A DNA stretch of 64,000 bases from Bugula neritina (lineage: Eukaryota; Animalia; Bryozoa). Made by a program: the position numbers and the translations under genes. Where the stretch lies: contig OZ037773.1 of NCBI GenBank assembly GCA_964035545.1, positions 8,833,751 through 8,897,750 of the forward strand, given 5' to 3'. Below the pieces are notes generated by a model, which made no database searches, was not told where the DNA came from, and worked only from the letters and a program-made list of their open reading frames with translations. This document shows, in pieces, positions 38,501 to 62,303 of this stretch (position 1 is the stretch's first letter; each line of letters opens with the position of its first letter).

Positions 38501-41500
38501 TGAAAAGTTAATATGGGAGGGAAGCTGATAATTTTATTTTTTGGAAAAACATCCTTTGGTTTATGAATACCACCTTTGCAACTAAAATAGATTCAATAAT
38601 TTTCAGTAACAATATTTAAGTGTGTTCCGGCTTGTTTTTTAAAAAGCAAATAATAGCTTGAAGTTTTGTGAAATTCAACAAATTCGTGATTTTAAATTTT
38701 CATATATTTTTCTTTAGAGTTATCAAGAATATTGACAACACTGATGGATTGAAGACACAGGAAATAAATTTTCTAGCAAGGTAAAACCTTATAACTGTTG
38801 TTACAGGACTGAGTTCTAGATGTTGATGATTATATACCTATAGCTTACAACTGCATTCACAAGTTTCAGTATTCTAAACCCAGAATACAAGTTGTATATG
38901 CTTTCAGTGAACAGTTCAGTTTATGGAAGAAGGCAAATCAGTTATTGGGAGATTCTATTGAAGTACCAAACCTGGCTCAGACAAAATCCAGCTGCGAAGT
39001 AGAAGAAAAAGCAGCAAATCTTAGAAGAAAGCGAGAAAAAGCAATAGCAGCAGCAAAATCAAGAGCAGTAGTATTAGTAGCAGTATCAGTAGCACTAACA
39101 GCAGTAGGAGTAGCAGCAATAGCAGCAGCAGTAGCAGTAGTAGCAGTAGCAGTGGCAGCAGCAGCAAAACCAAAAGCAGTAGCAGTGGCAGCAGCAGTAG
39201 CAGCAGCAGCAGCAGTAGGAGTAGGAGTAGCACTAGCAGTAGTAGCAGTAATAGTTATAGCAGTAGCAGAATCAGTAGCACTAGCAGCAGCGGCAATAGT
39301 AGCAGTAGTAGTAGCAGCAGCAGTAACATTAGCAGTTATAGCAGCAGTAGCAGGAAAACCAGAAGCGGTAGCAGCAGTGACAGCAGCTGCAGTGACAGCA
39401 GCAGCAGTGACAGCAGCAGGATTATTTATAATTGTGGTACGATATGCTGTTGTCAGTATAATATGATGTGAATAGATGAAGTAATTATTTACACTTGGAT
39501 TGTATAACTATCATCAACTTTAATGGTTTTATTCATACTATTATTTTATTTTTCATACAATTTATAGATATTGTGGAAAGATGGATATTCAGCACAACTT
39601 GGAGACAGCAGCTCACAACATGAAGGTAAGACTATGATGTATAGCATGTTCTAGAATATTTTAGATAACATGATAAACAATGAATTCTTCCTAGTTAAAT
39701 AGTTTATTTTCTAACATTGTTCCTAGAAATTTGGAACCAACTCCAACAGTGAGAATGTAAACAGGCTTTGTGGAGCCACAGCGAGTGGTTTTAGTTAAGT
39801 TTAAATGGTGGTTATACATATGTGTGCACATGTATCATTAGAACCTATGAAATATATCTATACTTTCTGTAAAACAGAATATGATTAGCTGTCCTGTATA
39901 GCTAAAGCTTTAGATTAAAGGTTGTTTCCTAACCCCGACACAGATGATGTTTGATTTTTGTTGGAGATTGGCTTCTCTCTCAGTCATGTTCATAATTGCA
40001 GTTTAGTTATAGATACAAAGCTTGAAATACTTGCCAAGAATAACTACAGATCTTTCAAGTAGTTTCATTATTATTAGTAAGTGTCATTATGCAGAGCATT
40101 GTCTGGTCAAGTGCTTCATAAAGTAATGATACTACAGTTACTAGTCTGTTAGACTATATTATTTTATTTCCGTACTGTTATCTAGAGAGAAGTCTATTAT
40201 CTGCTCTGTAAAGTAATGATACTACAGCTATAATTCATGTACATTGAACAATCTTATACCCTCTGACAAACTGCTTTATCTGATAATATTTTATGTGTAT
40301 TCCATATATCTTTGTGTTAGAATAATATAATATAGTTGTTATTTAAAGGCTTTAGTCATTGTAATATATTTATTTTACACAATAATATATGTAATGTTGC
40401 AGCTGGTACAGGACTTCAGTACAGTTTAAGTGATTACTCTGTTATCTTGGAAGGTCTCTACATTGATGTAACTGATGGTGGAGGGCATAATATACTAGTC
40501 GGTAGAAAGGGAGGGTTTGATGTATTGGATACTAGTAGTAAAGTATCTGAATCTAGCAGTAGTGTAGGAGGGAGGAGATATGAGATAGTGAAGTCTGTCA
40601 CAATAGAAGAAAGTGGTTTTATTCGGTCAATACAGAGATATGAGAGCTGTATATATACTCTGTGTAGAGTAAATGGTCAGCTACAAGTAGTAGTGTTTGA
40701 TGCTAACACATATGTTGAAGTAAAGAGATGGTCTGTACCAGAGATTGTAGGATACCTTATTAAACTAGCTGTGTGTGATGAGAAGGTATATATAACAGAT
40801 TACAGACATAAACGGCTAACTGTATTCTCTACAGATGGTAAACATCTCACTAATATTACACATTCTAGTTTCATTAAGCCCTCTGCCCTCTCTGTATGCC
40901 CTCCACACAGTATCATCATATGTGACCTCTTAGCTAACAGAGTACATAAACTAGACACTACAACACATGACATCGTATGGAGTTCTACTTCAGTGAAGAT
41001 ACCTGTAGCAGTATGCTGTGACCACACGCGCGGAGAAGTGTGGGTGTTGTCTCATGATACTGACTCTCTGTTCATCCTAGACTCTGAGACAGGTATGTTA
41101 GTTGCCAATATGACGTATTATAAGTAAATGTCATTACTAAATTACAGTCTTTATATAAGGCTTTAATTCAAACAGTTCTTGTAAGCTAGTCAGGTTTCAA
41201 ATAATATTTTGTGCAATTTTTTGTTGGCTAATAATTTTGTTAAACTATAGCACGTGAAACAATAGCAAAAAATCGTATAAAGGTATAGTTTTATAATATC
41301 TATATATAATCAATTTGCTACTTGAATTCATTATAGATTGTAATAACTTAATGTTATTGCCAACACCTAATATAATTATATATTTGAGTTCTATATATGT
41401 GTTAACTAATTTCCTTATATTATAGTCCTAAAAAGTTCTCCAAATGTAACAGGCAGTTTTATTCAACATAAGCCACATTATTTTTAGAAATTAGACATCT

Positions 41501-42074
41501 TTGAGTACTGTTCCGTGTGGTAAAAATATTAAACAAATATCTAGATTCTAGAATCAAAATTACTTTTTGACTATCTGGTGCAATGGAAAACAGTGAGGGT
41601 AACAGTATATATGGAAAATAGAAAGGGTAACTAGATGTAATGAACATAGAGAGGGAAACTCCATGTAATGGATATAGAGAGGGAAACTCCATGTAATGGA
41701 TAGAGAGAGGGAAACTCCATGTAATGAATATAGAGAGGGAAACTCCATGTAATGAATATAGAGAGGGAAACTCTATGTAATGGATATAGAGAAGAAAACT
41801 CCATGTAATGGATATAAAGAGGGAAACTCTATGTAATGATTTAAGAGGATACATGAATTTAGGTTATTTAATTTTTTGAGGTGCAACATTTGAACTTGTA
41901 ATTTAATCAATAATACATGTTGTAGGAAATCTCAGGCAGATACTAAGCAATACTAAACAATTGTACGACATTTTAGAAATGCGTTATATTGCTCGTATGT
42001 GTGTTGTGGAAGGACAACTCTGGGTAGCATTTTCATCTCATGGACTGGTAAAATTTAGAATTAACAGACACTAA
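29516..42074 (+). CDS. Array gene 1 (~780 aa): helical domain, Ala/Val-rich hydrophobic segment, NHL/SGL-like beta-propeller; exons 29516-30298, 30874-30944, 38718-38780, 38908-39436, 39568-39625, 40403-41092, 41926-42074
   Basis: Model is open end to end with GT-AG junctions and is collinear with copies 2 and 3. Blade motifs [41 protein letters not shown] and PVAVCCD..GEVWV. Linker exons are less certain. Confidence 0.75.
31121..31572. repeat. Compound microsatellite (TA)n-(TACATA)n-(TAAACA)n-(TG)n
   Basis: Directly visible; explains the IH/MY/YT ORFs. Confidence 0.97.
31575..38354 (+). mobile_element. Decayed Ty3/Gypsy LTR retrotransposon in intron 2 of array gene 1
   Basis: 5' LTR 31575-31980 (5' end truncated) and 3' LTR 37897-38354 (TG...CA). 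PBS TGGTGGCAGCAATGGGAT (tRNA-Leu-like); PPT GGAAGAGGTGG. Gag knuckle [13 protein letters not shown], protease [29 protein letters not shown], integrase [20 protein letters not shown]. Many stops and frameshifts; the RT YxDD/RNase H region is missing near 34570. Confidence 0.93.
38366..38470. repeat. (TA)n/(TATG)n microsatellite
   Basis: Visible just 3' of the 3' LTR. Confidence 0.95.
39040..39420 (+). repeat. Coding (GCA/GTA)n triplet expansion encoding poly-Ala/Val
   Basis: In frame with the preceding EQFSLWKK exon; much shorter in copy 2 (48680-48836). Confidence 0.85.
41643..41838. repeat. 28-bp minisatellite x7 (RATATAGAGAGGGAAACTCCATGTAATG)
   Basis: Seven near-identical units in the last intron of array gene 1. 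Confidence 0.92.
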
Positions 42075-61400: not shown

Positions 61401-62303
61401 CATTTGTTAGATACTGTTTTAATTCAAACAATGATTGTGAGCTAACCAGGTTTCAAATCTAAACTTTCTGCACTGTTTTATATGGTTAATAATTTTGATA
61501 AACCATGCATATATAGCATATGGGATAATAACAATTCAACTTCTGAAAATATATAGTTTTATAATTTCTATATACCCAACTTAATGCATACTTGACTACA
61601 TTAAATTTCAATCACTTTTTATTATTGCAAACAGGCTTAATATAATCATATTTTGGTCCTTTTTGTTTATGTGCTAATTTTCCCATTCTCCCAAGAAAGT
61701 TCTCTAAACATAATGGCAGTTTTATTCCATTCTGTTAAAAAGTTGAACATTCTTCAACACACAACCATATGTCCCCAAGAGCCCTGCACCATGTGGTTAT
61801 TGAGTCTAAATGCATGTATAAAATGTCACAAGGTTTAGTCCATATAAATATGTAATCAAACATTTTAGGGTAGACTGTAGAGTTATCTCATCACAACAGT
61901 TGGAAAACTTTATGGTAATAACTGCTGCAGCATCTCAGCTAAACATTCTAATCATGAAATCAATCAACTTTTGCAAACCGTATGAATAATATCTAGATTT
62001 TAGAATACAGATTATTATTTTATTTTTCATGGAAAATAGAGAGGGCAACTTCTTGTAACAAATATGGAGACAGTACACAAATTATAAGTTATTTATTATT
62101 TTCATGCAAGGGTAAAACTTGAATTTGCAAATTAATAAAGTATGCATGTTGTAGGAAAGCAGAGGAAGATAGTAGGCAATACCCAAGACTTGCGCCACCT
62201 TCTAAGGCAACCTGTTCCTGCTGGTATGTGTGTAGTGGAAGGACAACTCTGGGTAACACCTTTCTTCCGCGGACTAATAAAATTTAAAATTAAGCAACAA
62301 TAA
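55407..62303 (+). pseudogene. Array gene 3: two tandem helical-domain modules plus beta-propeller, with premature stop at 59148-59150 (truncated gene or pseudogene); exons 55407-56189, 56557-56627, 56754-56816, 56964-57078, 57691-57745, 58158-58933, 59106-59176, 59552-59614, 59735-59828, 60162-60225, 60679-61365, 62155-62303
   Basis: In-frame GT-AG chain up to GAT GAG TAG, where paralogs read GAG TGG (W). The hydrophobic segment at 59860-59950 is out of frame; the propeller exons are still open. Confidence 0.7.
57108..57450 (-). mobile_element. PIF/Harbinger-type MITE (GCCTAGGGCCACAC TIR), copy 2
   Basis: TTA/TTA TSD; reverse complement of 45304-45636. Confidence 0.87.

Follow-up and report, generated by a model that had tools for sequence, protein, structure and literature searches.

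Diversifying selection on one face of an NHL-type propeller and exchange between copies in a tandem gene array of the bryozoan Bugula neritina

We have analyzed a stretch of 64,000 nucleotides from chromosome 9 of Bugula neritina (positions 8833751-8897750), referred to below as the window, within which all positions are counted. It is AT-rich, eukaryotic DNA with direct repeats at a period of about 10 kb, a spacing that indicates a tandem gene array. The window holds genes 1 to 3 (copies c1-c3) of an array of five, and the copies c4 and c5 sit past the window end on the same chromosome. Each gene of the array has seven exons that code for a helical N-terminal domain (N-domain), a short linker, a hydrophobic tract rich in Ala and Val and a C-terminal propeller of the NHL type, predicted to have six blades. 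The interval under study (40403-62303) opens with the propeller exon of gene 1, at its first base, and closes with the stop codon of gene 3. In a six-frame search of the whole 216.0 Mb genome the propeller exons c1-c5 showed 72-75% identity to copy 2, and more than 130 distant propeller exons were found elsewhere. The family is one of tandem, expressed paralogs, five of them on chromosome 9; it has so far been seen in Bugula only, and no broad search of representative proteins was made.

All the genes are on the forward strand. The seven exons of gene 2 form a single continuous reading frame. Exon 1 (45892-46674) is an open frame coding for the N-domain, and transcript contigs join it to exon 2 (47230-47300; joint 46671/2 to 47230), exon 2 to exon 3 (48355-48417; joint 47300>48365) and exon 3 to exon 4 (joint 48416>48553), with exons 2 and 3 in frame. 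Exon 4 (48553-48853) codes for a basic stretch followed by a hydrophobic Ala-rich tract of 35 residues, a possible membrane anchor. Exon 5 (48970-49027) is predicted from splice sites and reading frame. The propeller exon (50178-50864) is covered by transcript contigs across 50298-50865, and its joint to the last exon (51708-51859), 50865>51715, appears in contigs of all four runs. The transcript evidence consists of contigs only, from four runs of four studies, one of them recorded as RNA-Seq. These contigs lack introns and must therefore be transcripts, and their identity to gene 2 (87-98% over the pieces listed) points to related alleles or paralogs in other animals as their source. Of the six splice joints of gene 2, they contain four. 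In the contigs of the four runs there was no joint linking exon 4, exon 5 and the propeller exon, so this part of the gene follows from the reading frame and the splice signals only.

Exons 2-5 have homologs in genes 1 and 3. Gene 1 starts from an ATG in exon 1 (29516-30298), an open frame coding for the N-domain of type 1 (82% to gene 2 exon 1 by tblastn), followed by the small linker exon 2 (30874-30944, a 78% match to its counterpart in gene 2) and exon 3 (38718-38780, 95%). Exon 4 (38908-39436, the 3' end being approximate) has a polar start, a basic stretch and a hydrophobic Ala/Val-rich tract of 141 residues, and is followed by exon 5 (39568-39625, 58%). The propeller exon (40403-41092) codes for blades 1-5, from strand A1 to C5, between the acceptor TTGCAG/CT and the donor ACAG/GTATG, in phase 1. 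The last exon (41926-42074) is predicted to code for strand D5, a hypervariable D5-A6 loop and blade 6, and holds the stop. Last exons begin after TTGTAG and contribute the final 48 or so residues of the protein. Gene 3 has an exon 1 of type 1 (55407-56189, an 86% match to gene 2) and a second, internal N-domain exon, of type 2 (58158-58933), which is 45% identical to type 1 and has its own acceptor and donor. Exon 2 (59106-59176) and exon 3 (59552-59614) are homologous to those of gene 2; in the exon 4 region (59735-60021) the polar part ends at a stop, and a Val-rich hydrophobic stretch of 39 residues lies in another frame. The propeller exon (60679-61365) and the last exon (62155-62303) complete the gene.

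The propeller exon of gene 1 was modelled with AlphaFold using an alignment of 37 natural relatives. The model includes this exon only, i.e., 4.75 blades, and blade 6 and the velcro strand fall outside it. It had a mean predicted local distance difference test score (pLDDT) of 88.9 and a predicted template modelling score (pTM) of 0.86, with 19 strands in A-B-C-D order. In Foldseek the NHL domain of Drosophila Thin took ranks 1 and 4, the PknD ectodomain rank 2 and the NHL domain of Drosophila Brat ranks 11 and 17, the top matches having E values of about 5e-9 and template modelling (TM) scores of 0.65-0.69 for five of the six blades. The best score against the Pfam NHL repeat (PF01436) was 17.8 bits (E 0.0033), under the cut-off of 20, and DUF5128, a six-bladed propeller, gave 15-17 bits, below its cut-off of 22.9. 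Judged from the fold matches and these sub-threshold scores, the domain resembles NHL propellers in fold, while its sequence is highly diverged from them. The 48 residues of the last exon read, in their sequence pattern, as strand D5 followed by the A, B and C strands of blade 6, and the N-terminal strand would then close a ring of six blades.

A preliminary description of this DNA had proposed that the three propellers differ in patches at the blade-entry loops over a near-identical scaffold. The seven patch triplets that it quoted (for example DYRHK/DHTHK/DLIHK and FIKPSAL/FIWPSAL/IIELSAL) are all in the translations at the places given, and the intervening strands are indeed near-invariant even in DNA, 0-2 bases differing among c1-c3: none of the 33 in an 11-residue strand, none of the 21 in VFSTDGK and 2 of the 24 in AVCCDHTR. 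The variable codon columns among c1-c3 (107 out of 280) were clustered, with a variance of counts in 6-codon windows of 2.38 versus 1.39 in permuted data (p = 5e-5; runs test p = 0.008). The placement at blade entries holds in part. The D-to-A loops do vary, but not those alone, since the B-to-C loops (YRHK, LLAN, HDTD) are equally variable. Along the model, LEGLYI precedes strand A1, VGRKG is the B1-C1 loop, ESGFIR the D1-A2 loop, CRVNG the B2-C2 loop, EIVGYLIK the D2-A3 loop, YRHK the B3-C3 loop, SSFIKP the D3-A4 loop, LLAN the B4-C4 loop, SVKIP the D4-A5 loop and HDTD the B5-C5 loop. With the model ending in blade 5, the long patch of the last exon is placed in the D5-A6 loop from its sequence pattern. 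The conserved motifs DE, TDGK and CPPH, on the other hand, are A-B or C-D loops. Propeller architecture places the D-A and B-C loops on one face, called the top, while the opposite face is made up of A-B and C-D loops.

We also observed a long Ser-rich C1-D1 loop (residues 43-59 of the gene 1 propeller, about 40531-40581), disordered in the model (pLDDT under 50) and yet almost invariant among copies, in which it contrasts with the top loops. It may represent a conserved bottom-face site for modification or docking.

Over the whole propeller, Nei-Gojobori ratios of nonsynonymous to synonymous divergence (dN/dS) among the five assembly copies were between 1.15 and 2.41, above 1 in all ten pairs. 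Further variants were obtained by a word search, 13 in two JGI metagenome samples and another in the NCBI assembly, all 70-79% identical to c1; a scan of the metagenomes with the propeller alignment gave no confirmed locus, and the variant loci were collected individually. We built a codon alignment of 15 sequences and 228 columns from the five assembly copies and ten of the variants, dropping columns with more than 2 gaps. None of the ten added sequences repeats any of c1-c5. Site models were run with our own implementation of GY94, not with PAML. M0 gave an omega (dN/dS) of 1.0. The log-likelihood (lnL) was -3933.09 for M1a and -3808.84 for M2a (2dlnL 248.5), with an omega of 6.96 at 18% of the sites. 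M8 was favored over M7 (2dlnL 264.4) and over M8a (247.5), with 26 positively selected sites at posterior above 0.95 under M8 and an omega of about 7 at 18-19% of the codons. As a control for recombination, four segment trees were used, and the result persisted (2dlnL 209.6, omega 6.6, 22 sites). The five assembly copies alone, last exon included (272 codons), gave a 2dlnL of 105.5 and an omega of 9.1 at 21%. When four data sets were simulated on the same tree under M1a, 2dlnL stayed at 0-1.4 and omega0 was recovered. In the last exon dN/dS was 1.36 over the first 25 codons and 0.72 over the remainder. The diversifying selection suspected from the patches is in this way borne out by the pairwise ratios and by the site models, and it survives both segment trees and null simulations.

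The selected sites are located on one side of the propeller. Residue class and height along the strand were set from the DSSP strand order of the AlphaFold model alone, before the selected sites were viewed. Fifteen of the 42 top-loop residues (D-A and B-C) were selected, against one of the 46 in the bottom loops (A-B and C-D; Fisher p = 4e-5), and 21 of the 24 selected sites with a height fell within the top 40% (p = 1.5e-5). The posterior mean omega increased with height along the strand (Spearman rho 0.39, p = 4e-9). When each class was scaled by its own dS, dN/dS was 2.36 in the top loops (bootstrap 1.49-4.07), 1.81 over the top face and 1.02 over the bottom face (0.61-1.84). Three selected sites (3, 5 and 11) belong to the N-terminal segment, which is poorly modelled without blade 6 (residues 1-8 have pLDDT under 50). 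The selected loops, together with the adjoining strand ends, form one top face by propeller topology, so that the variable residues are not scattered but placed as the preliminary description had expected of a recognition surface.

The history of the exons is different from that of their surroundings. Jukes-Cantor (JC) distances between the introns of the five paralogs are 0.2-0.9, while the exon dS is only 0.07-0.16. Conversely, loci with a common type of upstream intron (p = 0.03-0.06) have an exon dS of 0.09-0.14 and a dN of 0.11-0.15. The diversity of the exons is therefore independent of what flanks them, and all exons are about 85-90% alike irrespective of their neighborhood. Since the silent sites of the exons are far less diverged than the introns, purifying selection alone would not be sufficient to keep the scaffold near-identical, and the data indicate gene conversion. 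Several patterns of sharing were found among the copies. c1 and c5 are identical across about 110 residues, c3 and c4 have patches in common, patch variants recur in different combinations, and KLEPRGLS recurs in three sequences that otherwise differ. Segment trees are mutually discordant and raised lnL by about 185. In the top loops dS was about twice that elsewhere, as expected if conversion homogenizes the strands while selection protects divergent loops. We read this as exchange between loci acting together with diversifying selection, which would be the mechanism behind the pattern.

The N-domain (261 residues) has 20 copies in the genome. The AlphaFold model of that of gene 2 is all helical (pLDDT 85.3). 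No family in Pfam matched it, a word search found relatives only in Bugula proteins and contigs, and Foldseek against the PDB found nothing (best E 0.18). VIA-align gave the Roquin N-terminus (Z 7.8), the HEPN structures 2hsb (7.5) and 1ufb (6.3) and Csm6 (6.2), in rows that align to the first and last helices of the domain, around a central insert; for helical bundles, Z below about 13 is noise. Pfam HEPN_RiboL-PSP matched one of the 20 members (E 0.064). On reading the translations we noticed no Rx4-6H motif (no pattern scan was run), and the near-invariant columns of the 20-sequence alignment include one Arg (R29) and no His. With the VIA-align scores within helical-bundle noise and Foldseek empty, we did not call the N-domain a HEPN domain, and this identity is a weak lead.

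Genes 3-5 have a second N-domain exon, 45-48% identical to the first. In gene 3 its phase fits exon 2 and not exon 1, so the type 2 exon is probably an alternative N-terminal module, which suggests, as far as splice phases go, that alternative modules could be used from a separate promoter or 5' exon. Despite the low overall identity, a stretch of about 45 codons is almost identical between both types and looks like a conversion tract. Upstream of the array there is a very divergent N-domain-like open frame (25182-25841, 22% identical) that keeps the C-terminal CxxFxxxxxCxP pattern, and no propeller exon was seen after it. Tight arrays of N-domain genes were also found on chromosomes 8 and 6 (L053-L060), with a period of 3.4-11 kb; they share the 'EQxSLW' exon that comes next and have no propeller nearby. 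The N-domain appears, from these arrays, to be a separate module that is also used without the propeller.

The hydrophobic tract of exon 4 follows a basic stretch and varies fourfold in length among the paralogs, 141, 35 and 39 residues in genes 1-3 (38908-39436, 48553-48853 and 59833-60021). An unstable trinucleotide repeat (GCN/GTN) underlies it, present in gene 1 as 31 overlapping copies; the gene 3 tract is rich in Val and read in another frame. The tract may act as a signal anchor with the propeller on the outside of the cell, a possibility that its hydropathy raises weakly.

Exons resembling a B-box and a coiled coil are found 5' of the propeller exon in distant paralogs, and the B-box-like exon of the one on C6 scored 23.5 bits versus a cut-off of 24.1. 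The wider family therefore looks TRIM-NHL-like, and the chromosome 9 array seems to have exchanged its N-terminus relative to it. In a distant array on chromosome 3 (C3) the same loops are variable (dN 0.26 versus 0.03), yet dN/dS is below 1, so that an omega above 1 is demonstrated for the chromosome 9 array only.

The window contains a few other elements. Within intron 2 of gene 1, a block at about 32.0-37.5 kb has a G+C content of 0.47-0.54, versus about 0.33 around it. We considered ribosomal DNA and excluded it, Rfam finding one tRNA only (13318-13388, reverse strand, the sole Rfam match in the window). The block is a degraded retrotransposon: at 33800-36573, on the forward strand and outside the gene product, tblastn with intact pol open reading frames (L065) recovered frameshifted pieces of a gypsy-like pol. 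Intact relatives of this element exist elsewhere (e.g., L065:3-3746). A fragment of a retroelement integrase (rve, Integrase_H2C2), below the Pfam thresholds, is located between genes 2 and 3 (52956-53753, reverse strand). There are also two minisatellites, one of 28 nt (8 copies) within the last intron of gene 1 (41558-41875) and another of 19 nt (14 copies) downstream of gene 3 (62700-63081).

That diversifying selection acts on one face of the propeller is well supported. We go further and consider it probable that the array is a repertoire for non-self recognition, shaped by this selection and by gene conversion. Gene conversion or recombination would homogenize the scaffold and reshuffle loop cassettes between copies, and diversifying selection would keep and favor new loop variants. 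If the variable face binds a variable ligand, the array would be a germline-encoded recognition repertoire, the target being most likely a non-self product of a pathogen, a virus or a symbiont. The N-domain would be the output module, and the hydrophobic tract may anchor the protein in the membrane with the propeller outside, a weakly supported step.

Several points weigh against this interpretation. The ligand, the localization and the biological role of the array are all things that we infer. Neither fold nor motif is established for the N-domain, the membrane anchor is uncertain because the tract is a low-complexity repeat of very unequal length and in another frame in gene 3, and the wider family resembles cytosolic B-box-NHL proteins. 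Recombination inflates site-model tests, a problem that segment trees lessen and do not abolish. A model with a single dS overstates omega, owing to the raised dS of the top loops (the class-specific value is about 2.4 and not 7). The bottom face has a dN/dS near 1, so weak overall constraint is possible, and the top face itself rests on strand order and not on 3D coordinates, in a model that lacks the sixth blade. Lastly, the metagenome sequences are not assignable as alleles or paralogs, and they could come from a sibling species.

The same molecular pattern could have arisen from recognition within the species, in the form of colony fusion and rejection (allorecognition) or of sperm-egg compatibility under balancing selection, with the variable face binding a partner encoded by conspecifics in a hermaphrodite that mates by spermcast. 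Colony-level allorecognition exists in bryozoans and its genes are unknown (PMC3342096). Such a role would agree with the extreme diversity, every sequence from other samples being different from the five reference copies, and with exons that have diverged beyond the intron next to them, a pattern that old balanced variants should give; a tandem array with exchange between copies and a possible membrane anchor would fit as well. Yet there is no known linkage of the array to a fusion or mating phenotype, alleles and paralogs are not distinguishable in this data set, and at least 5 paralogs with more than 130 distant relatives varying on the same face fit a broad sensor repertoire better than one compatibility locus. 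We consider this reading unlikely, although it is the main alternative. We would give about the same modest credit to a more specific proposal, that the genes code for a so far undescribed class of animal surface receptors, type II membrane proteins whose hypervariable NHL propeller faces outward while exchangeable helical modules, possibly derived from HEPN, lie in the cytoplasm, and that they are the bryozoan histocompatibility or non-self locus or a part of it.

The remaining explanations do without positive selection, and both relaxed constraint and artefact were considered and rejected on the evidence that follows. Loops free of constraint could simply drift, with the strands kept by conversion or purifying selection and a dN/dS above 1 that is artefactual. 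The exon dS, being far under the intron divergence, is indeed no clean neutral yardstick, the bottom face is near 1, recombination is evident, and the same loops vary in the chromosome 3 array with dN/dS below 1. Against this, models allowing an omega of 1 were rejected (2dlnL 209-264), the top loops exceed 1 when measured against their own dS, even at the lower bootstrap bound of 1.49, and their mean dN of 0.33 over the 15 sequences is 5-10 times the divergence of the adjoining intron in the loci that share it (0.03-0.06). Besides, the reading frames are intact and transcribed. Drift is for these reasons improbable, more so than a role within the species. Hardly any weight can be given to collapsed or chimeric paralogs in the assemblies, or to misalignment of indel-rich loops. 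The contigs from the metagenomes are short and possibly chimeric, indels do occur in the loops, and the copy in the older draft at NCBI (GCA_010799875.2, L038:10570-11285) has an in-frame stop and a frameshift in the propeller exon. But the pattern holds in the chromosome-level assembly alone and recurs in both metagenome samples, in the NCBI assembly and among the transcript contigs, columns with more than two gaps were removed before the tests, and chimeras give false recombinants, not false substitutions. As to the NCBI copy, its closest metagenome relative (L036) is intact, and the copy itself represents a pseudogene allele or else an error of assembly.

A non-self recognition repertoire of this kind has parallels in other organisms. 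In the fungus Podospora anserina, the HNWD genes (het-d, het-e) have a WD40 propeller as specificity domain, with concerted evolution and diversifying selection on a few positions of the interaction face (PMC1805685). Like the array they are a multigene family with a propeller for specificity, exchange between members and selected positions grouped on a face of the propeller. The differences are that the HNWD propeller is of the WD40 and not the NHL type, within a NACHT/NLR architecture with a HET effector, and that single repeat units are exchanged and repeat number varies, whereas in the array the blades are fixed and loop patches are swapped between whole genes. The best structural matches of the array propeller were TRIM-NHL proteins (Brat, Thin/TRIM32 and NHL-2; 4zlr, 1q7f, 6d69, 8suc). 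Brat binds RNA on the top face. Unlike TRIM-NHL proteins, the array genes lack RING, B-box and coiled coil (no Pfam match upstream of the propeller) and have the helical N-domain and the hydrophobic tract instead, and classical TRIM-NHL genes are single-copy and conserved while the array is hypervariable. TRIM5alpha and the finTRIM genes of fish, tandem genes derived from TRIM, have variable loops of the B30.2/SPRY domain under positive selection and act as intracellular antiviral sensors. These vertebrate proteins have the SPRY fold and retain RING and B-box, and the array has a propeller and neither of them.

Propellers of the NHL type with six blades are found outside the cell in single-pass proteins, such as the ectodomain of PknD of M. 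tuberculosis (1rwl), our second-best match, and the teneurins. The array differs from them in having no kinase or YD shell and in its hypervariability, which is not known from either, and its membrane topology comes from hydropathy only. In corals, the propeller protein tachylectin-2 is highly diverse in its amino acids, has evolved under positive selection and has been proposed to act in immune recognition (PMC2880987); it belongs to a different family of lectin propellers, with five blades, and is secreted and not known from a loop-exchanging array. The array shows three features of germline recognition repertoires such as HNWD, TRIM5/finTRIM and plant R genes: omega significantly above 1 at a subset of codons, grouping of the selected sites by strand topology, and tandem paralogs that exchange sequence.

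To our knowledge, no recognition receptor genes, immune or for allorecognition, have been defined in Bryozoa. A review of 2011 counted bryozoans among the groups in which the genetics of allorecognition was still hidden (PMC3342096). The array provides concrete candidates, five expressed paralogs with about 26 codons on one propeller face and omega near 7 in the site models, and also evidence on the origin and maintenance of the variation, by exchange between copies plus selection. In it an NHL-type propeller would serve as hypervariable specificity domain, separated from the TRIM-like family members and combined with a new N-terminal module. The fold, the architecture and the phylum would all be new for this role.

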